From: Dimorphilus gyrociliatus
Taxonomy: Eukaryota > Animalia > Annelida
NCBI GenBank assembly: GCA_904063045.1
Contig: CAJFCJ010000005.1
Location: forward strand, 2,247,988-2,311,987
Length of the DNA stretch: 64,000 nt
Reading direction: 5' to 3'
Under the pieces are notes generated by a model that saw only the letters and a list, made by a program, of their open reading frames with translations, was not told the DNA's origin and searched no databases. Both the position numbers and the translations under genes were made by a program. Shown here piece after piece: positions 28,381 to 62,031 of the stretch; the first letter of the stretch is position 1, and the number at the start of each line of letters is the position of its first letter.

Positions 28381-31300
28381 ATGGAAGCTGCCAAAATCGG
28401 TATGACCTAGTTTATTTTTCTAATTAAAACTCCTATATTATTTTGTCTACTGCATGAAAATCTGTAGCCGTAAACTCATGTGATCAAATTAGACGTATGT
28501 TAACTTTTTGACTTAATTTCGAATAGGGGAATCTCCGAATAGGGAAATTCGGAGACGAAGGGGATGCCCTGTATTTTGTTTTTATGTAACACCGATCATT
28601 GTGTAATTAATCAACGTAGGTTTTTATCAATAATCTGTTTTTACTATTAATATTTTATTTTTCATTTTTAATCCATCATCGAATTCATACATGTTTTTCA
28701 CGTGACATTACTTAGCATGACAATAATAGTTGGAATGTGTTAATATATATATATATATATAGCTGCAGTATTTATTTCACTTTATAGGTGTATACAGCTT
28801 CTGCGATCTCATGATACACTGCAAAATAAAAGATTTTGCTAGTCGATTCTGTATTGATAATTATTGCTGACTTCGCAATTCCTGTAATGCGAACAACATT
28901 GTTTGTTTGCATTTAATATTCGTTTAACGTATTTCCGTACCTAGCAAATCTTTACTCTTTTTTTCTAACCATGCTACACAAACGTGTGTTGAATATTTAC
29001 AGTAGAGAGTCAAGTTCATGAAAAGCAACCTTTATCAATATCGGTACTTCCGTCAGATGGCAATACTAGTCGGTCGGAGTCTCCATCATCCAGGGATGAG
29101 AAAAAGTCACGATCTTTGGAGGCGCTTTTTCAGGTATTGTTTACTTAAATATATAACAATTTTTTGTACTAATATCAAATTAGGAAGTTAGTTTAATCTC
29201 TTTCTTTCTCTCTCACACTTTCTTATCTTTTTTTATCAGGTTACTCATGAGGAACTTCAGCATATGTCAAATAAAAATACGTCCGACGCTAGAACAATCT
29301 ATTTAGTGAAAGAAGGCAATGTTTTACACCAGATTCAATCATCGTCACCGAGTAATGTTGGGCAGGTTATTATTTTTTATTCATATCAACAGATATATCC
29401 GCCCACACAACTTAGTTCTTTACACCTTTCTTTTTATTTCTTTTGCACTGCAAATAGGTTCAACAATCAAGCGCGCAAAATTCTAATGTTTTCGCAACGT
29501 TACTAATGTCAAATCCGGATGGAACAACAACACCAACACCCGTTATTATAGCACAGCAATTTAATCAAGTTCAATCCGAAGCTACTGAAGTTCAAATTCG
29601 AAACGATAATGAAGGACAACAAATGTTTCCTTACAGTCCTACACCTCCAAATGTGGGTAGGAAGCGGAAGCATCCACAAAAGCCTGGAAAATATCAATGC
29701 TCATACTGTGGCCGATTATGCGCTAAGCCAAGCGTTTTAGAAAAGCATATTAGAGCCCATACAAATGAACGACCTTACCCTTGTACAATGTGCAGTTTTT
29801 CCTTCAAGACCAAGAGTAACTTATACAAACATCAAAAATCTCGTCAACATCGATCAAAGGTATCTGAAATAAGTGGTAGAGAAGGCTCTAGTCTAGATTT
29901 AGTTAATCAGCATTCCTTGGACGATGACCAAGAAGATAATGGAATTGCTGAACCTTCTTTTGATGAAGAAGACAAGGATGAAAGCAAAGACAAGCAATCA
30001 GAGGCAGTAGACATATTGCGAATTTCTGCTGATCAACATAAAGGATCACAAGTTCAAGTCCGTAGTAATGACGGAAATACCTTATATATTATTAACTCTG
30101 ATGATTTGGTTCAATTGGTCTCTAGGCACGTTGTTACATCAAGCCAAAGTACAGTGGGATCTACAGCTGTTGACCTTTCCGCAAGTTCTTCTTCTTACCT
30201 TCCTAAATGGAAGAGTACAGAGGGTACATCCGATACAAGAACTCCACCTCGAACACCAGTAACACATCTTCATAAATCTCAGTCAATATCAAATTCCAAG
30301 GATATACAAGAAAGAATTGAAAAGTTAATAGAACAAAACACAAACATTTTACAAGCTCCTATGGCTGAAGCGCCTCGGCCTAAAAAGCCGTCGAGACAAA
30401 ATAGCATCGCTGATAAATCCCAGCAACCCGGCTCTTATATCCTGGATCAAAATGCCATGGAACAAGGTATTCTGAGTTTGGCAAACTTAACAAACAAAGG
30501 CGAAGGCTCAAATCGTCTGCCACAACAGTTTACTATTCAAATACAAGTGCCTAAGGAACAATGTGACGCATCTAGTGTTCCAACAGAAAGCTTAGCGCAA
30601 AAGTATATTTGCACTTGTTCTGCAAAGTTTTCAACAGAACAAGATCTTATTGCCCATAAGGCGAACTGTGCTAAGTCAACCCAGCCAATAGCACCAAAAA
30701 TAAATACCTACGGAAGAGATTTGTATATTGAACACGTTGATCCCACTGAAAAATTGAAAAAGGGCAGACCAAAAGGCCTAAAAAATAGGGTATCTACATC
30801 AGATGATGTCGGTCGACCAAAGTTACGCTTAGATATTCCAGCACCAAACATAAATTTAGGCGGACAAGGTTTAGTTGATAGTCCTGTTGTGCTAGTAACG
30901 CCCACAACGCCTAGAACTCCTGATACTAGTACGAAAATGAAATTGAAATTGAAATTAATGCAACGCTCTATAAGCCAGGAAAAGCCTACGGAAACGACTG
31001 AGACCGGGAGGCAATCTCCGCAGAGCGCACCACCTCTGCAGAAATATTCTCCTCAGGATCCATCTCAATATCATCCACTCAAAAAGAGACCTATTAAAAT
31101 GGCTTCAGTAAATGATAGCAAAACAGCTATTGTCGAAGGGAATCAAGTGGAAGACACTCTTCCTAAAAAACGTTCGTCTCATGGAATCTCAAAATTAGCA
31201 TTAGATGGTGATGTTACAATACTTCCGAATTCTTCGGCTGTCGTCCACCAAAAACGTGAAACCGATAATTCATCTGCCATTAGTGTTACACCAACCAGTA

Positions 31301-34300
31301 TGATTCAAATGGGCTTAACGCCTAATCAAAACCTAATTCCGGTAGTAGAGACTGAAACTTTTCCCGATAAATCGCCGATTGTAATAGAATCAACCGCTTT
31401 AGATTTGCGACTGCCTTCTGTTCAAATATCGGAACCGAAACTGTTGTCTCACGCTGCCACTATAACTTCTTTACCTTTATACGAGCAGCAGGTTCTGACT
31501 GTTGGAAAAGAACTTTTGAAAAAGTATATGCCATCAGTTAACATCAATTTGTCATTGGAGGAAGATTCCCCCGTTGATCCATCTTCACCGCCACCGAAAA
31601 GGAAGAAGTTAACTCGCCAAAACTGCTTAGAAGAACCAGACAAATCACCCACAAATACACAAATTTCTGCTGATAAACGAGTATCAACCCCACTGTCGTC
31701 ACCCACTAAGCTCCCTTGGGAAAAGGTGACACTCGCTTTATATTTACATGGTCATAATTACCCACAAATGAGAACTGGTACTCATGTTACGTTCTGCTCT
31801 CTGTCTCGATTACAGCCTACATATGTTGAAACTGGGCAAAGACATATTTCAATGTACTCTAACTGGAAAACAACATCACACAACCCAAATCCTGATGGTC
31901 TAACATCAAGACTACTATTAAAATTGCATAGACTATACAGAGAGAACTATGATCCGAAAGTTGTGGTTTCTAAGAGAACGAAAACGGGTGAGGCAGTCAT
32001 GACTCATTCTTCTTATTGGACAAATAAGATGGACAAGAGCGACGGGAAGGATGAAGAGAAGGAGAGTCCTCAGCTGGAAGCTTCGCTGAAATTAGAAAAT
32101 TTAGTTAAAAAGAGCATGAAAGAACGAGATGTGCCGCCTCCTCCTACTTCTTCTGTCCCCCCTATTATCTTGATTGACAGTTCAGATAAAGAAACTTTAG
32201 TGAGTCAAAGTAACGTTGTTATGCAATCGAGTAATGTTGAGTTACTACAAGTCCCCGACTCTGCTACTCGGGTCGATCGGGTTCATTTGACCCGTCAATT
32301 GAGTGTCGACGAAGAATTGCAAAGGCATTATTTTTTGGCGGTTAAGGCTCCTAAACTAGAATTAACTAAACGGTCTGCCACCACTGACGCCACAGGGAGA
32401 AGACCACAAGTTACCAAGGTAATTGGAGGATTTAAAACGGATGAAACTTATACCTACGTTAGGGGGAGAGGTCGAGGGAAGTACGTTTGTTCTAGTTGTG
32501 GAATTCGTTGTAAAAAGCCTTCAATGCTTAAGAAGCACTTGAGATCTCATACCGAGCTCAGGCCATATAGATGCTTACAGTGCTCTTTTAGTTTTAAAAC
32601 TAAAGGCAATTTGACAAAGCACATGAAGAGTAAAGCCCACCAGAAAAAATGTATAGAGAGCGGTATTGTTCCAGTACCTTCAGCGGTTGACGATGGAAAT
32701 ATCGATCAGGACCTACTAAGAAGACAAATGGCACTGGAAGAACAAGTTGCTAGCCTGGAGCATTTGCCAGACGATGACGAAGAAGAAGATGCTAATGTAC
32801 AAACTGTAGATCATGAAGTGACAATAGTGGGAGACGAGCATGTCGTTGAAGGGTGAGTCAGAGAAAATAAGAAAATATATAATATACAATATATTATTAT
32901 TATATATATATATAGTATATACCAGAGAAACTAAATAATAAATGCATATATTCTATATATATGCTATATATATATTATACAGTATATATATATATATATA
33001 TATATAAATTTACAGTAGCTTCTATACACTTTACCCTTTCCTTTCATTTTTTTTTATTACGCCTTCATTTTCTATTTTTAGAGAAGAAATTGTAATGACA
33101 AGTAACGATTGGTCAGAAGATGCTGAGGCATCTGGTAAATTAGTTAATATAATACAAGAGGAACAAAACCCTCAATATATAACCAAGGAACAAGCTGAAC
33201 CAATTGCGATTGTAAAAACACATGGTTGGTAATGGGTTGTAAATATACAGGTAATGGTGAAATTTCAGTACTTTTTCTTTCCAGATACATCAATAAAAGC
33301 TCCAAGAGCGTCTTTAGACAAAGAAATTGCAGCACATAGTTTACTTGATTTGAGTTCCGGCAAGCAAGATGAAGAAGACGAAGCAGAAAGTGTTCAAGGT
33401 CAAGTGATTGGGAGGAAAAAGTCTAGAAAGCCAGATAAACTATTCATAAATCTTCAAGATATGCCCACTAAACTATCGACGATAACAATGAAAACACCTT
33501 CCGTCGAACATGCAGCGGAAGATATATCTCGTCATCTTTCCGGTTCAACTGCAGGTTTTATTCCGCCCAAGGCCAACCACGAAGCGGTTATTGTTGAACC
33601 CTTACCAAGAAATAGACCTGAAGACTTGGAAGAAGAAGAGAGTGGCATCAAAATACAAAGGATTAATCTGAAAAATGATAAGGAATTACAAGCTAGACCA
33701 ATAATGGTGGATGATTCGGAGAGTCTTGTTAATGGAAAATATTTATGCAAGACTTGCGGAACTACGTTTTCAAAGCTGCAGCAATTTAATATGCACAAAA
33801 ATGTACACGCAGTTGAAAGACCGTGGAAGTGTAAAGAGTGCAACGTTTCTTTCCGAAACGAAGGTCAATTGCAGAAGCATCACCGTAGCGAAACGCATGC
33901 AAAACAAGTTGTTATTCTGCAACAATTCGGAGCTGTTTCTGCTGAGAATCCCCGACCTTATCAATGCCATCACTGTAATATCGGATTTAGAGTTCACGGA
34001 CATTTAACGAAACATTTAAGATCTAAGGGCCATGTTCAAAAATTGGAAGCTTTATCTCTGCTGCCCCCCGGCTCTTTGGGTATATTAGAAAAGAGAGATT
34101 TAAGCGAAGTAGACGCATCGGATTGCGATACAGCGTTGAACTCTTTGAAAAATATTGTAGAGGAAAGCGAGCAACAAAAGACTAAAAAGAATACGACACA
34201 AGAGAATGAATCCTATCGTTTGAAGTGCGGTTTATGCCATATGAAAAATTTTGAGAGCATTCATAAATTACAGGTATATTTACTCTCAAACTCCTGCATT

Positions 34301-34652
34301 TAACAATCTTTTTTCAATTTATCCTCGTCTTTTTCTTTTTAATAAGGAACATATGAGTTTTACTCATCTTGAGATTAGACCCTACGTCTGCCAATATTGT
34401 GACGCGGGCTTCACAAATGCAGACAAACTTCAACAACATATGTCCTCTCACGTCCAGGTTAGAAAGCGCTCTTATTCGATTAGACGTTCTAATTTCACGC
34501 TTTTTATTTTACTATAGGACTCGAAATGGCATACCTCATTGAACGAATCGGAAGTGACAACCTCTTCTGAAGACGAGGAATCGAAAAAAAGAAAATTAGA
34601 CGAAGACGACGACGACGAAACTTTCATACCAAATAAGAAATCTGGAAGCTGA
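28381..34652 (+). CDS. shn: Schnurri/HIVEP ZAS zinc-finger transcription factor with 10 predicted fingers
   Basis: Two ZAS pairs (CAKPSVLEKHIRAH/FKTKSNLYKH; YVRGRGRGKYVC...KKPSMLKKH/FKTKGNLTKH), one CCHC finger and a C-terminal finger cluster. Inferred 5' exons 28381-28399, 29057-29133 and from 29240 are phase-compatible. Confidence 0.95.
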
Positions 34653-37789: not shown

Positions 37790-39125
37790 AAACAGCTCCA
37801 CAGACTATACTTTACGACGACGCGGTATATATGAACTTTATTAGGAAGACGCCCGAAGCTTTTCGGCTTAGGAGTAATGAGTTTTTCACTTAATCGACGA
37901 CAGATTTTTTTTCTTCTTCTCCTGCCAACGATGACTTCAAACGAGAGTTTATTTAGAGATTGAAGAGGAAGGAAAAGAGCCGCCTGGAAGTCCTTACCGA
38001 TCCTTTTTACCCCTACGAATGAGAATGACTTGTAATAGGCCACTTACCAAACGATGAAAGAACTCCCTTCTGTAATTCGTACATCTACAATAGCAAGAAA
38101 CGCCTTGCCCCCTTAGTTACGTCATTCCAAACGTCCCAGATCGGGGCCGCGTTTAAACGTTGTCTAGAGACCCCTAATGAAGCGACGACGCTTTCTCTCT
38201 ATGTATGCTCCACCCCTTACGCATACATACACACATTTTAGAAATATATATGTATATAGGCGTCTATATATACTTATCTATGTGTATGTATAAGCGTATA
38301 TAAATATGCATTTACGCATAGGCCTAGTAAGTTCGACACAATGCGCTATTTGATTCGATTTTGTTTGCGCGACGCCCGACAGTTTGCACGCGAGTCTTCT
38401 TTGTTAAGCCGGAGGCGCGAAAGCCCAAGCTCTACTGCAATATCCCTTTTACGTCAACTGCAAAGAGAATTCATCCAGTTTTTTTTTTCTAAAACCAGGT
38501 GTGTTTGTGTTTAAGTTAAAGGCCTTTCCCTTTAAAAAAATTTTCCCTTTTTCCCAACTCGAATACTCTTTCTTCTCGGTAACTCCCACAGTCCCTCCTA
38601 CTATGCTTATTTCCTTAATAAAGACTAGAAAACGAGTATTCAGAGAACAGGAGAAAATCCCTAAGCTTTCCAGCGGATTAAACGACTATAAAAAAAAGGT
38701 TGAAAAAAAAAAGAGAGTATTAAACGGAATAGTAAATAAAGAGGAAAATGAAAATAAATAAAATAAAAAAGAAAAAAAAAACGCCGGCGTTTAATCCGCC
38801 TCTAGCGACTAGTCACGACACGGTAGCTTGTATTTGCTCTATCCTTCTACCGTTTTTTTTTCTGTTCTATCTATCTTTCTCCCTGTCTGTCTATCTCTGC
38901 CTGTCTCACTCTCTCACTCTCTATCTCGCCTTTCTCTTTTGTTTCCTTTTTTTTATCAAACAGTACTAAAACATCTTTTTTTCGCTGGCATCTGCAAAAA
39001 TTTTTTGCAGATTTGTCTTTTTTTTACCGAATAAGAGTAAGTATAAAAGAGTAAAACGTTTTCTATTTTCTAAAATAGATTAAGTGGAAGAGAGGCGCCA
39101 ATCTACTTTATCATTTTGGAGGAGA

Positions 39126-40379
39126 ATGAAGTTCAAGGAGTTTGTGACAACTAAATTCTTTAGAAGAAAGAAGAAGAACATTACTAAAACATCTCTCTAT
39201 CATACTCCTCCTAGTCCTAATTTTCACCTAGATCTACCCCCTTCTGAAGCAGCTTCGTCCGTTTTGTTTCGGAATGAATCACCGATTTATTCATCTCCTA
39301 AAATTTCTGCTGTTGGTACCTTTCAAAGGAGGAGTGCTAAAAGGAATACGATAGCCGCTTCTCCTTTCTATTCAACGCCCTACGATTCAATTCCACCTAG
39401 ACCTGTTTCCGAGTTCTATAGCTCTGTTAGGAAACCTGAAAGGCCAAGGAGTCGTATCAAAACCAATCCGTGGATAGTACCTCCCACCGAAGAATATGAA
39501 AATCCTGTTAAAAATATTGTTAAAAACCCTGTTCGTAGGCCTACTTGCGGCATTTTCGCTCCAAAATCTCCGAAGACGTTAAAGACATCGGGCTGTTCGG
39601 CTTTCGATAAGATATCACCCGATTCGGCCGTCGACCTATTCTTTCCGTACGAGAACTTGCCAGCCGACGATGACGCCGATAAAGAAGTTGGCTACTTCTC
39701 TAGGCAAGAAATTGAAAAGTACCCTCACTGCATGACCTACGAACCGGAAGTAAGCTTTGAGTACGAAGACGCGTTTGAAGAAAGCTTAGAAAGCGAAGAA
39801 ATAAGAAAATTGAGAAAGAAATTTCGAGATGAGGTGTTTCTGTCCTACGAAAGCTCTGATCATTTGTTCGAATCTAGTGATGAGGGCGATATGACGCTAA
39901 GTGATTGCGACAGTGAGACTGATAAGACTGATAGTGAAAGTGAAGTTCTTGTTGAAAACGATGATAATTTATCTTGCGAAGTAGAAGAAACCGATATTGA
40001 CGATGACGACGATATCAGTGCAAAGAATCGTAACCGTAATAGCGACGATGATGACGAAGAGGAAGGTGAACAGGAAGGGGAAGAGGAAGAGGATAAAGAT
40101 TGTAAATTATCATCAGCCGATGGCGATTCTTTAGACTCAGCGATTGAAATCGTCGATGACACAAGAATAGATAGGGAAAAGATACTAGCTCAAAAATGCG
40201 TCACCGAATTTCGAAAAAGACAACTGCTGCAAACGCTAGAAGATCTGAAGAAGAAGTTGGAAGATCAAAGTGAAAAATTACAATCGTCTACTTGTAGCGG
40301 CCTAATTAGTTTACGGAATCGGCAACTTACAAGACACTGCATTGCAGTTTGTATCGACGCCCGAGAATGTCCGTTCTAA
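39126..40379 (+). CDS. Unknown 417-aa intronless protein: Pro/Ser-rich N-half with YEN motifs, acidic middle, C-terminal coiled coil
   Basis: Long open frame with coding-like composition; first ATG at 39126, after an in-frame upstream TAA and acceptor 39078. No family recognised. Confidence 0.78.
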   Translation: MKFKEFVTTKFFRRKKKNITKTSLYHTPPSPNFHLDLPPSEAASSVLFRNESPIYSSPKISAVGTFQRRSAKRNTIAASPFYSTPYDSIPPRPVSEFYSSVRKPERPRSRIKTNPWIVPPTEEYENPVKNIVKNPVRRPTCGIFAPKSPKTLKTSGCSAFDKISPDSAVDLFFPYENLPADDDADKEVGYFSRQEIEKYPHCMTYEPEVSFEYEDAFEESLESEEIRKLRKKFRDEVFLSYESSDHLFESSDEGDMTLSDCDSETDKTDSESEVLVENDDNLSCEVEETDIDDDDDISAKNRNRNSDDDDEEEGEQEGEEEEDKDCKLSSADGDSLDSAIEIVDDTRIDREKILAQKCVTEFRKRQLLQTLEDLKKKLEDQSEKLQSSTCSGLISLRNRQLTRHCIAVCIDARECPF

Positions 40380-47365: not shown

Positions 47366-48428
47366 TTAACTAAACGCTGCCTTCATCTCCTCAGTATGCT
47401 TATCGACCCATTCTTCGTAGGTGGACATACTTGGGGCAAGTTTTCTCGTCATTGCAACGTCTCGATCGCATTTTCCTGTTTGATAAAACTCGAACATGAC
47501 GGCCAAAACTTCAGCTCCTGGGAATCCCAATTTACTATAATCTTCGGTCGTTATCTGTAATCATTCGTATACGCCTAATCGATTCGTCGTTCTCTATATA
47601 TACGTCAATCTTACTTTGGGCGTAGCTATCTTCACTCCTAACTTCTCCTCCATAAGGGTAGCGTACTCCTTCATTGATTGGCAAACGGATGACAAACCTA
47701 TTGCTTGACCCACAAACTTTTCAGGCGCCTTAAAGATGTTTGTAATGCATTCTCCCGCCTCATTTACAAAAATAACGTCGAGAGGATAATCCCCCATTGG
47801 TATGTTAAAGGAGAACGAACCGTCATCGTCTTTAAGGGGCTTCATAAGCGAATAAAAATTTTCAGCGTAGAAAGAATAGCGAACTATTGTAAATTTTAAG
47901 CCAGACTCTTGAATGTATTGTTCGAGCTTTGCCTTTGAATCGAAATGGGGACATTTCTTACCGATCAGCTCTTCGACATTCTCTAATCCCGAGAATATTA
48001 AATGTTTACAACCTGACTCTTTTACAACGTCTACTACATTCTTGCCCTCATTGTACTCTTTTTCCTCGTCGAAAGCTTCCCAGAATTGAGTGACGAGAAA
48101 GACGCCGTAAGCACCTTTTACAGCTTCTTTCAACGACTCGACATCGCTTTGATCGGCTTTTACAACTTCAATACCTGGATAGATATGTTTTTAAAGAGAA
48201 AAACAAAGGATACAATCTATCTTCCATGCATATTTACATCAACTCACCCTCTTCAATCAATTTCTTGGCCTTTTCACCATCCGGATTTCTGGTAACCGCC
48301 CTTATCTTAAAGCATTTATCCTTCTTCAGAAATTCCACAACGCCGCCTCCCTGAGCGCCAGTAGCTCCGAAGACTGTTATTAATTTCTGAATTTCTTCAG
48401 TTTTGGCTGTTGAATTAGCGCAGCCCAT
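47366..48428 (-). CDS. NMRAL1: NmrA-like (HSCARG) NADP(H)-binding atypical SDR with N-terminal MGCANS extension; 3 exons
   Basis: TVFGATGAQGGGVV, RAVTRNP, PHFDSK and LGFPGAEVLAVMFEFY motifs. Confidence 0.93.
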
Positions 48429-48994
48429 ATTTTCTTCCCCACGTAGACGACGCTGAGCAAGAGACTAATGTTCTTGCTTTTGCAATAATAATAAAAAAGA
48501 GAATACTGATTTCTGAGTAGTATTAAATGTAGATTGAGCGTCGTCAAAGCGAAGACGGCATATTGTAAAACTATAGAAAAGAGGACTGACGCTAAGAGTT
48601 AGGATTGAAAACTTAATAAGGGGGCAGCGGGGGAGAGAAGGTCTGACGAGAGGGGGCAGGAGAGGTCAGTCCAGGCCTCTATAGCAATTTTATCTAAAAG
48701 CTCTTGGTGAGAATTTCGACTTGGTCCGCTCTTCCTTTAATCATATCGAATAATTGTATATAGCACCTTGAACACGTTACAAGGTCATACATCGGCTACA
48801 TTTTTCACTCGGCTAAGCTCCAAGTATTGAATTCCAATGAAAAAACAGATAAATAACGATTAACTAGTCTATATAAACCCGTATGATATTGTATTACTTT
48901 TCGTAGCAAATAATCATAGTATGAAAAAAAAATTTTTTTGCAGTATATTGTTTATATCAAGTTTACATAGGCGTTGATCTTGTTTTCTTTCGAA

Positions 48995-52667: not shown

Positions 52668-53642
52668 ATGACTCATTACTTCGGACCGGAATCGCCGCGT
52701 CCCTTCGCGGTATTAAGGGAATCCGGTGCTTCTTCATCTTCTGATTTGCCTAGTTATGGCATGGAAGACGATATCTACTCTTTTGGAATTGATTATGAAT
52801 TACGCATGTGTCAATTAGTTCATAAGCACTTGGAATTAGGAACAAACGATAAACTTTGCTACATCGGAGAGGATAAAGGAAGTTTAGCGCCTTTGCTGAC
52901 TAACAGGTTTGGTCTTTTGCAAGAACCAACTGTCGTGTTTCCTGGTCGTATTCAATACGAGGAAGACCATTTAAAGAGGAGAGTTGCCATACCTTTAGCA
53001 AATATTGGAGCAGAAGACTTTTTTAAAGAAAGTTCCGATCAATTCGATAAAATTGCTCTGGTTTATTCAATTAACTTTATCGACGACTTGGGTACGTTTC
53101 TTTGTAATGCTATGGATCATTTAAAAGACGACGGACGTCTAGTTGTAATTGAACGAAAGCCGGAAATGAATACTTTGCCATTGTTTAAAGAAGCAAAGAA
53201 TAAATTAATGGAGAACGAATTGGAAAAACATGATTATTCGAATATAATTAAATGTCTTCAGGCTGCAAGGGCTGATGTTTCTTGGGAAGTTGAATTACTA
53301 AATATAAGAATGCCCAAAGCTAAATGGTTCAATCAGTTACGTTCTAGGTTTCCGAGCCCGTTAGAGATGTTTAGCGATTTAGATATCGAAGCTGGAATTA
53401 GAGAATTAAACGACGGAATGCTCAAGTACTGCGTTGATTCAATTATTGAATTCACTGACCGCCTGCTGTTTATTACGGGAAGTAAAACTTCACCCAATAG
53501 GTATCCGTCCATTCAACGATTCGGGTCGAGTCTACTTAGTCCCCACCCTGATATGAAAGCAATGAATTACTCAATGAAAGCCACTCCAGAATTAATGAAA
53601 TACTTACCTAAGAAACGTCTTCCTAAATTAGGTGAATATTAA
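52668..53642 (+). CDS. Class I SAM-methyltransferase-fold protein with degenerate motif I; intronless
   Basis: Strand/helix order LCYIGEDKG ... GAEDFF ... FDKIALVYSINFIDD ... LKDDGRLVVIER is typical of Methyltransf_11/25-like folds. Confidence 0.8.
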   Translation: MTHYFGPESPRPFAVLRESGASSSSDLPSYGMEDDIYSFGIDYELRMCQLVHKHLELGTNDKLCYIGEDKGSLAPLLTNRFGLLQEPTVVFPGRIQYEEDHLKRRVAIPLANIGAEDFFKESSDQFDKIALVYSINFIDDLGTFLCNAMDHLKDDGRLVVIERKPEMNTLPLFKEAKNKLMENELEKHDYSNIIKCLQAARADVSWEVELLNIRMPKAKWFNQLRSRFPSPLEMFSDLDIEAGIRELNDGMLKYCVDSIIEFTDRLLFITGSKTSPNRYPSIQRFGSSLLSPHPDMKAMNYSMKATPELMKYLPKKRLPKLGEY

Positions 53643-54121: not shown

Positions 54122-57100
54122 AATGACTAAAAAGTCGACAAATGATGATGATTTTGAAAAATTCCTTCAAGAGGTTTGTCTAATTTTTCTAACTATTTAC
54201 ATTATTTATTAAACGAATGTCAATATTCGGAAAGAATGTTACAGTATTAAAAACTATTGTTGATTAATTATGATTCTATTTTAAATTATTCAATTCAAAT
54301 ACTAATTGAAAATTAATAAATATGACCATTTTACAATCTTTTAAGTCAATATCTGAAGATTCTACATCATATGGTCCAAAAGTACGTATGAATAAGAAAG
54401 ATAAACTATGGTGGGACGAAGATGGAGACACTTGTTAGTATTATTTTAAAAAATGAATTCATTTCTAATTGATTACTAAGAAATGAATGTTTAATTATGA
54501 TCTTTTATTAGCCGAAAAGACACAACCAAAAATGAGTTTTATGAAGACGAAAAAGAAAGAATCTATCGAAGAGAAGGTAACTAATTATAAATAAATAATA
54601 ATATTCAACATCCGTTGAGAGTAATGTTAATTAAATAGAAAATAGATTAATTATATATTTATATTTAATATTTTTTTATTAATATGCTGACTTTGCGTCT
54701 TTTTCTCTCCTTTCACAAATCTTAAAATAGAATGTGGGCAAAGATAAAATACGCCTGAGCAAAGATAGTTTAGATGATACTCTTGAGAAAACCGAGAAAC
54801 CGAAAGATAGTATTACAATACCTAACTTAAATTTGACCTCTCAATCTTTTGCCGAATCTGAGACTGACGGTAATCAAGCGCCAGGAAATGAAACGTTAAT
54901 GGAGGAAGCTGATAAAGCAGCTTTTTTCAAAAATTTAAGGGAAAAGGAAGGAAAAACTTTGGAATTTGAGAAGCTGGCAGAAGAATGCGACACTAAAGGT
55001 TTTCCTACGATTAATGAAGAGAATGATCTAGAAGAGGATAATGTCAATGAAGAACAGAAAAAGGGAAAGAGTACACTAAAATATGAAGACGAAGAAGAGG
55101 AGGAGGAGGAAGAAGAAGAAGAAGAAGAAGACGATGAAGAAAAAGGTCCTAGGCCAGTTGGAAAAAGAGATATGAAACCCAGTATGTTGTCTAAAGGTAA
55201 TATTTTCTTTACTTATTATAGTTAAAGGACTTTTTTAAAAAAAATGATGTATTTTTCTAGTGTCTTTACTCGACTCTCTGGAATCATCTGGAGGCACGAA
55301 AATGATATCAAAGGACGATTCAGGAAGTAAGGAAGAACTCGAGGAAGTAAAGGAAGAAGATGAGAAAAAAGTAAAATTTCTAAGAGACACCGATTCGTCT
55401 AATGCTGTTTTGGAGGAGTACCAACGCCATCTGAAACAGGGTATGTCTTACAGCACGAAAGATGAAACGGGATATATAACCCCACCCGGAGGAACAGGTC
55501 TTCAACCCACAGTTGGTTTGTAGTCTAAATATAGTCCAACTATGACGTTAATGAACTATTTTCTTTTATTTGTCAATCCGAACTAGATGAGGTTGGTGAC
55601 CTATACGACAGAAGCAAAAACATAGAGACTTTGTATGGTGAGTGTATTTACTGTATATTACAAGTTGCGTAATTAATTAAATTTACTTTTTTACTTGCTA
55701 ATTTATTTTAAAAGATGAAAAAATTAGTAGAAATACGGATTTGGATGAGAATTTTACAAATTTAGATTTGAGTCCTATTGCTAATCATACACCTCCAAAG
55801 GCTTTGCCTAGAACTAGATCATCAACAGAACGATTATCGAGTACAAAGAAGGGTAGAGTATCTCTAATTTGGTATAAAACCATTGTATCGCTTTAATTCG
55901 AATATATTGTCTATTAATTAGAAAAAAAGAGGCATGACAAGTACAGGAATGTTAGAAGTTCAGGCTATGGGAGAGTCTCAGAAGAGCGAAGAAAACATCA
56001 AAAGAGCTCCGATTACGAAAAACCCCCAAAACAACCTATAAGGGAAGAAAATCGTCGACTTAATCACGGACGTGACAGGGAAGAACAATTCGAGAAGCTC
56101 ATTAAATCCCAATCGAAGAAGGGTAAAGAAACCTTATCAACTCAAATGCTTTCGACCGCAATTTGTGAAGAAATGGACGAATGGAGACTTAGATGGCAAG
56201 CCGAGAAAGTAAAATCTGATAAATTAAGTGCAAGCCTAATTCATTCAGAAAAACAATGGATTAGAGATAAGGAAGACATAAAATCAAGATACGAAGAGGA
56301 AATTGTTAAATTAAAAAGAGAAAATAATGAATTAATGAACAAAGTAGCTAAATTACTAATAGTACTTTTTTTTAATTGAATATTTAATTAAGTTATATTA
56401 AATTAAACAGTTTGAAAAGGTCAAAGTTATCTCTAGGCAATCGGACGATGAAAAGTTAACAAACTTCTTAAATCAAATTCAAGATCAGGAAAAGTTAATT
56501 AATGGATATCAAGTTGAAAATGAGAAATTATATCAAGAGATGAAATTAATGAAAATTGATAGAAAAACTAATGAAGAGAGGTAGAATATTTCAATTTTAT
56601 CTCCAAATTGTATAACTTAATCAACAATTTGTTTATTTTTGGTTTATTTGTAGACTTATCAAAGAAAATAGAAAATTAATTACTGAATTAGAGAATATCA
56701 AGTAAGTTTACCATACGTTTTTATATTAAAATATGTCTTATACATCCTTTTTACTCTAGGGAACAAACACTACCCAGAGAGAGATTGGTAAAGGGTGAAT
56801 CGTCCAGTATAGATCATTCATTAAGTTCTAATAGAATTAAACAGTTGGAGACGGAATTGAAGCAGATTAAAGTAATGTTTTAATGCGTTTAGTTTTTCTT
56901 CTTTCCAACTTAAATAAATAAAAATATATATATATATAATATTTTATTAGGGCGAAATGAAAGAGAATAAAATAGCCTTAGAGTTAACAAAGAAAGAGAA
57001 GAAAGAGGCCGACGAACTCTTTGAAATGACTGTTATTAAACTAAAGAGAATGGAGGAGAAAGAAGATGAACTAAGAAATAATATTTCAAAAGAAAATAAA

Positions 57101-59906
57101 GTTAGTTCTTATAAAACAATAAATAAATATATAGTTTATTTATGTAATGCATTTTTAATAATTTCTAGAAAGATGTTGAAAAATTACAAGAAATTAACTC
57201 AAAATTAGAAAGAAAGATACGATGGTATGCTGAAAATCAAGAATTACTTGACAAAGACTCAATTAAGTTGAAAGAACAACATCTAAGGATAAAAGAACTT
57301 GAAAAAAAAGTAGAATATATGGAAAGTGATGTATGTTTCTTCTATTAGTCAATATTTTATAAGATTGATGCAAATTTATTATATTTCTCTTTTATATAGG
57401 AATATCAGAAAGGTAGGCTAGAAAAGTTAAGACAGAAGGAAAAGCAAAGAGATTTAACCAAAATAAGAGATTTAGAGAGACAAGTGAAAGAATTAGAGAA
57501 TATCATTAAAAAACGTCATCCGAACTCGATAGCGTCCTTAATGTGGGCCGCGTCGTCAGAAAAACAGGATAATCCAAATATGCCATCTATAAAATTTCTT
57601 GAAGATCGTTGCAAACGATTGGAAAAAGAATTAGAAGAAAGGGATGATGAAGAAAAGAAATCCATCAGGGTTTTAGAACAAAAATTCGAGAGAATGAAGG
57701 GAACTTATGAAATAACTATTGAAGATTTAAATGATAAATTGGGCGCTTTAACTAAAGGTAGTTCAGAAAGACCACATACTCATATGAAAGCCTTAGAAAG
57801 GGAATTGGATAGCGTTAAAGAAAGGTAAGGACTCTTTGTCAATGAATAATATTTCTATTGTAAAAAGAAAAGATACTACCATTTACTGGCGCCATCTATT
57901 AGTCAGAATACGCCCTAATCCTGGCTAATATACAGTATAAATTTATATAAAAGTATACATATCATATTCGCAAGAAGGTGTAAAATCATGAAACTCGTGA
58001 TATATTAACAATGGAATGACGTCTTTCCAGTTTCAACATTTTTAAAGCTTCATGTTTTTTTTGTTTCCTTTCCATTATTAACAATTGTTACAAAAATACG
58101 TTTACCCCTCACCTTAATAATCGCCCTCCACCCTTAAATCTCTTGTCCATTTAACAATGACTATAAAGAAATTAAAATATGTATTTGTTAAAAGTTTTTC
58201 ATTTTTTTTTCAAGTGCATTATACAAAGAAAATGTAAAGTCCTTTTTGCCCTCGCGTCCCTCCCCCCTCTACCAATGACACAAATACTTATATTATTAGC
58301 TTTAACTCTCCTATTCGACTAATTCAAATAATTTTATCTCAACTCTTCAGATATAGGAAACGAGTCGTCGAACTTGAAAACGAAATTGAACAGCTACAAA
58401 ATGAATTACAATTAGCTTTAAAATCTTCACAAAATCCTCAACATTCCTCTCCAACTAAAAAAGAGAATAAATTATATTTCGAGATTAAAGAATTAAAGAT
58501 AGAAAGGGAAGAATTAAAACTAAGAATTGATGATTTATTAAAAGAAATATCTCATCTAAAGGAGCAATCTTCAAAGAAAATGCCAAAGAATTCAAAACTT
58601 ATTGATAATAATATACCAAATTTAGAAAAGGATGTAGAAATTTTAACAAAAGAGAAGAAAAACTTGGAACAAGAGGTGACTATTTATCATTTAGCTCTTT
58701 CTCTCATTCTTTCATTTTTCCAATGTTGATATTTACGCTTAAACGAAATTGTTTATTTTTAATTTTAGAATCATAAGCTTACTTCCTTTTTTCGTTAAAA
58801 TATTTTAAGTAGGCAACTTAATCTTTTCCCTTTTTCAACTAAATCGAAAGTAAACGTAAACAAAACTATTCGAAAATTACGTAAGAAAAAAGAATTTCTA
58901 GTAGGCTTAATTGACTTCGTATCGGTTATCATATAAAAAGCAAAGGAAATTTTATCGTCTGAAACCTTAATTAACACGTATATCTAATTTAGACGACTTA
59001 CAGCTGTTCCATTCACACAAAATCACGAAGAGACAAAGAAAGAAAGAAAGAAAGAGATGTTCGTAAATTATCCTGTTAATTCGTTTTTATTGTTAGAAAG
59101 AAAACTATTTTACATATCACGTCTATTTTTATCCACAGCGGAAAGAAAACAGTAGGCAAATCTATCAATGATAATTATATAACTGTATCTTTCTTTTACG
59201 TCTTATTTGCTTTATAAATATATACTAGGATATATATATGTCATTTATCTAGAATAAGGAGTTACAAAGAATTCTTGAAAATGACCGCGAAAGATGGAAA
59301 GATAAGCTTCATGAAGCTTTTGAATCTGAAAGGAAAACTAAAGAGGAAATTGAAAAAAAGGTATTGAAAAGAAAAGATAAAAACAAAGTTTAGTCATTAA
59401 ATCAATAGCTATTCTTTGTTTTAAAACTTTAATTACTCATTCATTATAGTTTATTATTATTATTACTTTTACAGACAGCTGAATTGTATAATGAACACGT
59501 CCTGGCCATGCAGACTTTCTACTCAAATCCACCTAAAATTGAAAGGACTGAACGGCTAGAAAAGGAACTTTCACTTGGTAAGCAAAGACAGACTGCTCTT
59601 GAAGATGAAATTAAACAACTCTCAGAAGATCTTAAGGAGGCAAGATCTAGCCATACGGCTGAAAGGCGTCATATTGATTCATTATTAGAAAAAATTAGAC
59701 GTTTAGAAAGTCGACATATCGAGAGAGAGTCTGAAATAAAGCATCTTCTTTTATCAAAAAGTATTAAAGATGAAGAAGAAGATCAAATAGAATATTGGAA
59801 AAGTGTAGTAGATAAGAAAAATAGTGAGATAGAACGTTTTAAATTAGAAATGGACGCAATATTAGAAAATGTTAGGAAATTACAAAGAAAAAATACTCAT
59901 AAATAG
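54122..59906 (+). CDS. CEP162: Centrosomal protein 162-like coiled-coil protein, multi-exon
   Basis: N-terminal DDDFEKFLQE, RQVKELENIIKKRHPNSIASLMWAA and C-terminal KNSEIERFKLEMDAILENVRKLQ match recalled CEP162/QN1 segments. Confidence 0.88.
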
Positions 59907-60153
59907 ATATTTTCTATTATTTTTTTAAAAAGCAATTTCTAGAAAAATTATTATTAATATTCATATGGTTCTATTTTCGTATATTTTCTTAACTGTATAT
60001 GAAAACATAAAATAAATATAAAAAAGTGTTAGTTTTTTTAATGAACGATAATTCATATATGTTCTGTCTTATATTTTCATCGTTAAAAAAATTGTCTCAG
60101 GATTTAAATATAACTGTTTAAAAAATAATTAATTTAATTAAAAGAATGTACTT

Positions 60154-60187
<34 letters not shown>

Positions 60188-60212
60188 CATTATTCATTAA
60201 GTTTAAATATAG

Positions 60213-60720
60213 TTCTTTTTGTGCGAGTCATCTATGTAAACGGGTAAAACGGTATGTTTCACTCAATGTTCTGAAACGATGAACTACGGATGGGGGGAAA
60301 ATTCTCCCATCAAGTCATCAATATTGCTGACATTTAGCCAAATCTGACTAATATCTTGACTCAGGATGTTAGATATGACGAATTTCAGACACTGAGAGCG
60401 ATTATTTTAACGAGCAGTGATGAATTAAACGAATCTTATCTGGTGAAGTTCCTGTTTTTAAAAAAGCTAGTTGAACTCCCATGATTCGTTAGTGTTCTTT
60501 ACACCTGAGCTCAATAGAAACCTGTGTAAAACACACTCTTATTAAGTATGAAAGTTTTTTCCCAATATTCTATAAATAATGTTTACTAAATGTCAGTTGA
60601 CTAATGACCTAATTCCGGATGTTTATTAGAGAGTATTTTCAAAGAGAGTATCAAAATTTTTCAAGAAGGGAAGAAATTAGCCAAAATAAACTTCCTTATT
60701 CAGTTTGAAATTTGTAGAAT
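60213..60720 (+). ncRNA. Putative non-coding 5'TOP-like snoRNA/scaRNA host transcript
   Basis: TCT/TOP-like TTCTTTTT (60213-60220), donor AAACG|GTATGT (60252), acceptors at 60596 and 60703; only an ATG-TAA in exon 1. Inferred from motifs alone. Confidence 0.4.
60269..60513 (+). ncRNA. Tandem box C/D guide RNA resembling SCARNA9 (mgU2-19/30); module 1 predicts U2 snRNA Gm19
   Basis: Module 1: C-like TTGCTGA 60324, guide TTTAGCCAAA 60333-60342, D' CTGA 60344, 12-bp hairpin, C' ATGACGA, D CTGA 60392. Module 2: GAGC-A-GTGATGA (60412-60423) ... CTGA-GCTC (60505-60512) with terminal stem. Confidence 0.72.
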
Positions 60721-60973
60721 ATAAAGATTTTCATAACTTTTTACACCTGTTGATGCTTTTTCTTTTCCTTTCCCTCTTCTTCAATAATAACATTTTACTT
60801 TCCCTATATCTTTTAATCAGTATATTACCTTCCTATAAAAAATTGTGATTAGTTTATTGACGAAGAACAATTAATAGCGTCTAGTATACACAGTATATAT
60901 GTTTTTATAAGGTTATTTTACTTTTTATCATGGAGGTTGTCACTTCCATGGTTAACCGAGGTGGACGGGGCTG

Positions 60974-62031
60974 TTAATTTTTTTTCAATTTAAAGAGGCC
61001 ACTTGATACACCACCACGTGGTATTAGACCACCGTGTATGTAAATGTCATTGTCAGTATAAATTAGAACTTGACCGCTCCTCGCTATAGAACTTGATGCT
61101 AATTTATAACAGGTTAAATTCGGCTTAAAAGTTATTAAGAAAATATCTCCGCTTGGCTCCACAATACTTCTCCCTAAAGGGATAATTAAGCTTACATTTT
61201 AAGGTTAGGGAAAGAGGAAAGGAACAAGAAACCTGAGAATGGTTCCCCACCGAACACTAACATCATACCACAACCTTCTATAGCACTATGGTGTCGTCTG
61301 ATTGGAATGTTCTTTGTTTGCGATAGTTTTTCAGTGTTGACGAATGCTTTAAGACATGAACATGGCTTATAACCTTTCTTATACCCTCCATGTTCTTCAA
61401 TAGCCTTATCGTCTCGACCGCCGTGTACTACAATATTGTTGTTAATAATAACAGCCGTATGACCTGATCTCGAACTCAGCCCCATAGGATTGACTCGATA
61501 TTTGAAGGCATTTAAATTTCCCGTTAGAATATAGGCATTTCCTGTCCGCCTTTGCATTCTAAGCCCTCCCTCCCTTCCCAAGATGAGAATATCATCGTTG
61601 CTTAGTAAGGTTGACGTATGGGAGCTTAACCCAGCTCCCTCAGGAAATCCAGAAGTAGGAACTTTCTTCCAAACTTTCTCTACCGTGTCGTAGGAGTGCA
61701 CGTCGGACGTCCGAACTTTTCCATCCCAACCGCCAATCAGTAAAAAATACCTATCCCTTAGGACGACAGACGAATGATGACTCAAATAGGGTGACTGGGC
61801 GGTCGTTAAATCAGTCCATCTGGAAGTCCTTGTATCGAAAGACTGAAGCTTATTAAGGGGATTTTTGTCGCCTTTCGAAAACACCCCACCATGAATGTAG
61901 ATAGCGTTATCTATAACACATGCGCAATGATAGGCCGCTGGGGACGGACTTTGATTAATGAAATCCCAGTCCAAAGTATTTTCTTCTCCTTTGTTTGAAT
62001 TAATGCTTGATCTTCTCCTATCCGTTGTCAT
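60974..62031 (-). CDS. KLHDC9: Kelch domain-containing protein 9, 2 exons
   Basis: LSHHSS...LIGGWDG, AGLSSHT, GREGGLRMQRRTGNAY and SRSGHTA motifs; one phase-1 intron near 61230-61175. Confidence 0.9.

Follow-up and report, generated by a model that had tools for sequence, protein, structure and literature searches.

A conserved tandem box C/D RNA that probably guides U2 Gm19 methylation in the annelid Dimorphilus gyrociliatus

In a 64-kb stretch of Dimorphilus gyrociliatus DNA (referred to here as the window), positions 60253-60513 of the plus strand hold a conserved non-coding RNA of ~260 nt that consists of two box C/D units (referred to as unit 1 and unit 2 respectively). The window matches contig CAJFCJ010000005.1 of the assembly GCA_904063045.1 with 100% identity. 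This tandem C/D RNA is real, conserved, transcribed and structured, and it is probably a box C/D guide RNA for the 2'-O-methylation of G19 in U2 (Gm19). The features discussed below are listed in Table 1.

A conserved island with two C/D units

The RNA sits where two convergent genes, CEP162 (+) and a KLHDC9-like kelch gene (-), face each other with their 3' ends. It is on the CEP162 strand, and its start lies 347 nt past the stop codon of that gene (59906). For comparison we used a relative represented in the Logan assemblies SRR23372228/9 (loci L001/L002), whose kelch protein is 83% identical and in which the gene order kinase, LRR, kelch, CEP162 is conserved; there the distance from the CEP162 stop codon to the RNA is 379 nt. 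The relative's counterpart of the upstream gene carries the Pfam domains CEP162_C and CEP162_helical_3, and the kelch exon at 61192-62031 (-) matches a KLHDC9-like protein of D. gyrociliatus. Host-gene synteny with human SCARNA9 (CEP295) was rejected, as the upstream neighbour is CEP162, and the RNA lies outside any intron, unlike SCARNA9. Elsewhere in the window, a single-exon ORF of 324 aa (52668-53642, +) with no Pfam match has a counterpart of identical length in the relative (L001, 12044-13018); it is a conserved orphan protein, methyltransferase-like by eye only. C2H2 zinc fingers are encoded in two long single-exon ORFs (29506-32856, +, 1116 aa; and 33254-34303, +, 349 aa).

When the intergenic DNA was compared with the relative by BLAST, only 60325-60512 aligned (79.5% over 190 nt), with both flanks unalignable, and MAFFT stretched the conserved block to ~60253. 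From the CEP162 stop codon to the point where the KLHDC9-like mRNA ends (~60921), 60253-60512 is thus the sole island of conservation. The similarity is lost immediately past the GCUC strand that closes unit 2, and the sequence upstream of the RNA shows no conservation in the relative; the initial annotation had placed the start of the RNA at 60269, instead of near 60253 where the conserved RNA begins. The longest invariant run (60335-60361) spans the putative guide core (UAGCCAAAU) and the D' box as well as the 5' strand of P3. The comparison covers two species and a fragment of a third, and no more relatives came up when JGI metagenome contigs were scanned with exact 24-mers.

Table 1. Positions of the RNA elements, the neighbouring genes and the transcriptome contig (window coordinates)
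Feature	Position	Strand	Remarks
CEP162 orthologue	54734-59906	+	Coiled-coil gene; last exon ends at 59906
Stand-alone 309-nt contig of run X2	60215-60523	Indeterminable from contigs	Depth ~105
Closing helix P1, 5' strand	60256-60275	+	Pairs with 60384-60399; contains TTCTGA
Leader hairpin P2	60278-60319	+	In the relative, sequence almost all different, hairpin kept in place
Degenerate C box, unit 1	60324-60330	+	UUGCUGA here, GUGGUGA in the relative
Element antisense to U2 nt 16-25	60333-60343	+	Core UAGCCAAAU (60335-43) invariant between the two species
D' box CUGA, unit 1	60344-60347	+	Invariant
Hairpin P3, D'-C' connector	60348-60372	+	10 bp, 60348-57 with 60363-72
C' box AUGACGA, unit 1	60375-60381	+	GUGACGA in the relative; R position still purine
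Helix P1, 3' strand	60384-60399	+	Includes the unit 1 D box, then GAGC
Unit 2, canonical box C/D module	60412-60513	+	GAGC-AG-UGAUGA ... CUGA-GCUC
Helix P5, 5' strand AACGAAUC	60428-60435	+	Pairs with GAUUCGUU at 60483-90; 8 bp
GUUAGUG, candidate CAB core	60488-60494	+	Within an invariant 12-nt block
Hairpin P6, GUGU/ACAC	60492-60504	+	4 bp; abuts the D box; both differences from the relative in the loop
KLHDC9-like kelch gene	60921-62031	-	59-nt intron 61173-61231; mRNA end ~60921

Unit 1 has the order C box, guide, D' box, hairpin, C' box and D box, as in vertebrate mgU2-19. This layout had been proposed in the initial annotation, and the hairpin, C' box and D box that it listed are all present at their positions; the C box proved to be degenerate. 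Of the 5' leader described there, the long hairpin (P2, with a GAUG at its base that is conserved in the relative) holds up, while the supposed TTCTGA box (60269-74) is part of the 5' strand of helix P1 and pairs with the C'-D spacer. Box conservation in the relative, named there as a check, was found for the unit 2 boxes and the D' box, which are invariant, and for the C' box, which keeps its purine; the unit 1 C and D boxes vary.

The internal D'/C' pair needed for a second k-turn is present in unit 1, with CUGA, P3 and RUGACGA all conserved, and P3 is predicted to act as stem I of this internal k-turn. Unit 1 on its own lacks the canonical combination of outer C and D boxes closed by a terminal stem. 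Its C box aligns to AUGAUGA of the Rfam model snoU2_19 and has a non-A at the critical fourth base in both species, and its D box is CUGA (60392-95) here and UUGA in the relative, embedded in helix P1. Because the C box lacks the critical A and the D box is UUGA in the relative and buried in P1, unit 1 has only one convincing k-turn (D'/C'). A canonical terminal C/D k-turn for unit 1, made of either cGAUGA (60277-82) or UGCUGA (60325-30) with CUGA (60392-95), was rejected because it has no stem I that is consistent across both species and is incompatible with the covarying helix P1.

Unit 2 has a canonical form, with a terminal stem of GAGC (60412-15) and GCUC (60509-12) as described in the initial annotation, a C box GUGAUGA (60417-23) and a D box CUGA (60505-08). 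The boxes and the terminal stem are invariant in the relative and in the fragment of the third species. This is the sole canonical C/D pattern in the window, where 0.24 would be expected by chance.

The putative U2 guide and its likeness to vertebrate mgU2-19

Directly upstream of the D' box CTGA (60344-60347, plus strand) lies TTTAGCCAAA (60333-60342) followed by T at 60343, so that the guide and D' stretch of D. gyrociliatus reads UUUAGCCAAAUCUGA. Our U2 reference was the textbook metazoan 5' end instead of this species' own U2, and the guide reading presupposes UUUGGCUA at U2 nt 16-23 and UUUUGGCUAAG at nt 15-25; U2 stem-loop I differs in sequence in some animals, e.g., nematodes and flies. 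Against this textbook U2, the claimed complementarity to nt 16-25 is borne out, with nine contiguous Watson-Crick pairs (U16-A24) and one G-U pair (U60333-G25). Counting upstream from CTGA, the fifth base is C60339, and it faces G19, as the initial annotation had stated under the D+5 rule. In the relative, the UU of D. gyrociliatus is replaced by AA; pairing to textbook U2 is 8 bp there, again with G19 at D'+5, and the 8-nt core UAGCCAAA is the only part of the guide common to both species. The UU lengthens the pairing contiguously to A24 and G25, and the duplex formed with the 5' end of U2 has an energy of -12.8 kcal/mol, against -10.9 kcal/mol for that of the relative.

By chance, 0.05 in-register guides of at least 9 bp beside CTGA are expected per 64-kb window, when register with any of the ten human U2 Nm sites is counted, which amounts to dozens per genome. 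The guide match by itself is weak and not significant genome-wide, and the finding therefore rests on its context. Two look-alikes occur in the same window. At 48385-48440 (-; match at 48400), AGCCAAAA-CTGA presents an 8-bp complement to U2 nt 15-22 in the G19 register and lies among the opening codons of a coding exon (MGCANSTAKTEE...), which makes it a useful chance control for the main finding. At 39905-39931 (+; match at 39928), a 10-bp complement to U2 nt 44-53 lies beside CTGA, with D+5 at A48, inside an ORF (39084-40379) that has no Pfam hit; its register is one base off the known Um47, and the complement is probably due to chance.

Rfam searches of the window and of the relative's loci at gathering thresholds returned nothing. 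The initial annotation had suggested an Infernal search with the Rfam models as a check, and its outcome was mixed, with a full-length match in the relative and no model reaching its gathering score. Among all 4227 Rfam families, the relative's best match is snoU2_19 (24.2 bits, E 0.18, below the 39-bit gathering threshold of RF00494), and model positions 1-80 of 80 align to 78 nt of its unit 1; with unit 1 of D. gyrociliatus itself, no match to snoU2_19 appeared even when E values up to 10 were allowed. The snoU2_19 consensus runs C box, A, AAUAGCCAAAU, CUGA, hairpin, C' box, short spacer, CUGA, GA. Its guide and D' box (AAUAGCCAAAUCUGA, 15 nt) are identical to those of the relative, whose AA is thus the vertebrate state. 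The snoU2_19 score is not independent evidence, because it rests mostly on the guide that prompted the finding, and it is no proof of common descent. A match of sraA to unit 1 (26.8 bits) was dismissed, as this is a bacterial family and the alignment covered the G-rich hairpin only.

The best Rfam match of unit 2 is snoU2-30 (18.6 bits, E 0.9), in which only the boxes and the GAGC/GCUC termini align. A member of RF00493 (snoU2-30) would be expected to score 60 bits or more and to carry the guide CUACACUUGA upstream of box D, which places A30 at D+5; the relative scores 13.9 bits, and the vertebrate A30 guide is absent from unit 2, with only UACAC remaining directly before CUGA. This remnant makes 5-6 pairs to U2 with D+5 at A35, and no U2 match of at least 8 bp exists at the D box at 60505. 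The two would-be guide regions of unit 2 pair with each other in helix P5, and the stretch beside its possible D' box varies between species and has a 3-nt deletion in the fragment of the third species. A guide for U2-A30 or U2-G25 in unit 2 was rejected on these grounds (5-6 bp only, in a region that varies between the species and the fragment). With the A30 guide gone and the would-be guide regions locked in P5, unit 2 is a guide-less C/D module. We also considered that unit 2 might have arisen by duplication of unit 1 and then diverged, an idea prompted by 5' halves that look alike by eye and by a snoU2_19 score of 16.6 bits on unit 2; it was rejected, since local alignment was not significant against shuffled sequences (P 0.3-0.9).

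An unlikely alternative is that this is a genuine C/D or otherwise structured non-coding RNA in which the U2 match is coincidental, the RNA having another target (rRNA or another snRNA) or a chaperone role of the U3 or U8 type. The core shared between the species is just 8 nt, and an 8-mer can arise by chance in several kb of rRNA; however, 8-9 bp in register at a true D' position would, with ~10 U2 Nm sites, be expected by chance at the order of 1e-3 or less, and the guide of vertebrate mgU2-19 is identical in extent and register. Although conservation of the guide core does not exceed that of the neighbouring hairpin strand, the UU that distinguishes D. gyrociliatus from its relative adds pairs contiguously with those of the core. 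That unit 2 has no free guide does favor the alternative to the extent that a guide-less function exists within the RNA.

Transcription and strand

The region folds with a z-score of -4.0, and RNAalifold on the two species found six pairs in P1, P2 and P5 that are changed on both sides and still paired. Three such double-sided changes lie in P1 (U-A to C-G, G-C to A-U and U-A to A-U) and one compensatory change lies in P5 (C-G to U-A), while in P3 one U-G pair becomes U-A in the relative. Helix P1 further holds two G-U pairs that are possible only on the plus strand, and the folding energy of the plus versus the minus strand is -71.2 versus -61.5 kcal/mol here and -62.1 versus -54.0 kcal/mol in the relative. 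Because of these G-U pairs and a fold that is 8-10 kcal/mol better in both species, we infer that the RNA is read from the plus strand.

Transcription of the region was seen in one of two public sequencing runs (X2). The type of this run is not on record, but it behaves as a transcriptome, given that its contigs lack the introns of the two neighbouring genes. The guide-RNA locus is covered by a stand-alone contig (Table 1), with a depth of 0 at 59909-60211 and of 35-57 at 60494-60832, compared with 711 for the kelch mRNA, which ends near 60921; such contigs speak for transcription of the region and cannot give the strand, ends or level of the RNA. On its right, the stand-alone contig stops where the assembly graph forks at a splice site of the other strand, and this is not an RNA end. 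The fork is caused by a minus-strand GT..AG intron of 87 nt (60522-60608, depth 26) with exons at ~60832-60609 and from 60521 leftwards, so a spliced minus-strand transcript enters the guide-RNA locus; the relative does not conserve the splice sites of this transcript. A second run, a marine metatranscriptome (X1), yielded the fragment of the third species mentioned above, a 196-nt contig that corresponds to 60363-60559 and is ~95% identical to the window. It differs only at the apex of unit 2 (60439-41, 60454 and 60459) and past the 3' stem (60516-19).

The antisense intron, together with its downstream exon and the depth of 35-57 that runs through 60494-60832 on a strand that contigs cannot assign, also raises the alternative that the island is a minus-strand transcript (a downstream or antisense RNA of the KLHDC9-like gene) or a cis-regulatory element, and that its C/D look is incidental. 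We consider this very unlikely. On the minus strand the G-U pairs of the helices would become A-C mismatches and the better fold of both species would be lost, and conservation stops exactly at the terminal stem of the plus-strand C/D unit, whereas the rest of the antisense exon, like the splice sites, is unconserved. Moreover, no AATAAA or ATTAAA (-) is found just before the contig end at 60215, and the contig depth of 105 exceeds what flows rightward from it (35 + 26). The remaining alternative, a chance cluster of short motifs in non-functional intergenic DNA, could draw on the window-wide expectations of 0.05 for the guide and 0.24 for a canonical C/D unit and on the look-alikes in coding sequence of the same window, but it is already contradicted by the conservation of the island with compensatory changes, the discrete transcript contig, the z-score of -4 and a guide identical to the vertebrate family consensus, and is the least credible reading.

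As for its biogenesis, the RNA would be equally well explained as an independent Pol II gene or as a product of processing from CEP162 read-through. A (TA)n microsatellite (60144-60194) ends in TATAAATA (60176-83), 32-39 nt before the start of the X2 contig; TATAAATA may represent a TATA box or simply reflect AT-richness, and the relative holds no counterpart of this stretch. Transcription by Pol III is unlikely given a run of five T inside unit 2 (60455-59). We could demonstrate neither a cap nor an snRNA-type promoter nor a 3' box.

Relation to known guide RNAs and proposed mechanism

Like vertebrate SCARNA9 (mgU2-19/30; RF00494 and RF00493), the annelid RNA has two box C/D domains in tandem. 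As in mgU2-19, AAUAGCCAAAU stands directly 5' of the D' box with G19 at D'+5, followed by the hairpin, C' box, short spacer and D box with the same lengths, and the termini of unit 2 (GAGCA-UGAUGA ... CCUGAGCUCA) resemble those of mgU2-30. Unlike SCARNA9, in which the two domains are separated by a GU-repeat spacer of ~175 nt that serves as Cajal-body signal (PMC4041459), the annelid RNA has a linker of only 12 nt (60400-60411, GAUUAUUUUAAC) and no GU repeats anywhere, which confirms the short linker without a GU repeat noticed in the initial annotation. It is also shorter as a whole (~260 nt vs. 353 nt in SCARNA9; PMC4395269), non-intronic, has a degenerate C box in unit 1 and carries the added 5' helix P1 and hairpin P2, and its unit 2, in contrast to the mgU2-30 domain, has no A30 guide. 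The initial annotation had interpreted the RNA as a SCARNA9 orthologue. Unit 1 is indeed mgU2-19-like, but extending orthology to the whole RNA exceeds the evidence, with unit 2 lacking the A30 guide.

Among invertebrates, Drosophila scaRNAs (mgU2-25, mgU2-28, mgU2-41, mgU2-48, mgU4-65, mgU5-38 and mgU5-42) are likewise C/D guides for 2'-O-methylation of snRNA. PMC3884663 describes them as intron-derived, and its list contains no U2-G19 guide. Drosophila C/D scaRNAs have no GU repeats and instead carry a short Cajal-body sequence, the box C/D CAB consensus cgaGUUAnUg (PMC4041459), and the annelid RNA has GUUAGUG in unit 2. This match covers the core only, with the fly 'cga' part unmatched, and the 6-base core arises by chance in ~5% of 260-nt stretches, so GUUAGUG is a candidate only for a fly-type Cajal-body signal. 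In human, SCARNA2 (mgU2-25/61) and SCARNA17 (mgU12-22/U4-8) are similar to the annelid RNA in that they are tandem C/D-C/D RNAs that do not reside in the intron of a protein gene, and both are independently transcribed (PMC4041459).

In the reading that we prefer, a guide RNA for U2 Gm19, unit 1 (~60256-60399) would correspond to mgU2-19, which forms the 5' domain of vertebrate SCARNA9. The unit 1 core UAGCCAAAU would pair with U2 nt 16-23 (to nt 25 in D. gyrociliatus), i.e., the loop and 3' strand of stem-loop I, while the D' and C' boxes would form a k-turn across hairpin P3. Snu13, Nop56/58 and fibrillarin are expected to assemble on this D'/C' k-turn and on the C/D k-turn of unit 2, and fibrillarin at the D' box would then 2'-O-methylate U2 G19, opposite the fifth guide base. 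The outer C/D motif of unit 1 has decayed, and its structural place is taken by the long closing helix P1, in which the 5' leader pairs with the C'-D spacer. Unit 2 most likely supplies a strong k-turn that nucleates snoRNP assembly and guards the 3' end, and P1, P2 and unit 2 together would protect the ends of the RNA. Unit 2 may also bear the fly-type Cajal-body signal GUUAGUG.

Since unit 1 keeps only the D'/C' k-turn and the guide, and unit 2 has a perfect C/D k-turn but no guide, the two units might make up one composite C/D RNP, a 'split' guide RNA in which the k-turns stand side by side rather than nested. We regard this arrangement as doubtful. Such a composite particle could have arisen by decay of complementary halves in an ancestral tandem of the mgU2-19/30 type that predated the protostome-deuterostome split.

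The RNA is an ordinary kind of guide RNA in an animal group that is new for it, and it opens no new class of system. To our knowledge, and in the literature that we searched, a U2 Gm19 guide is known only from vertebrates. The RNA adds a previously unannotated gene to the D. gyrociliatus genome, shows the miniaturisation of such a guide in a 70-Mb genome, and provides a small and tractable case of outer k-turn decay in a C/D RNA. The modification in question is of functional interest, as U2 Gm19, guided in human by scaRNA9, belongs to the small number of snRNA methylations without which human extracts have been shown not to splice (PMC7960923). That an annelid has the guide in the same register, within an RNA of the same domain order, suggests an ancient origin of the guide among bilaterians, and perhaps of the tandem layout too.
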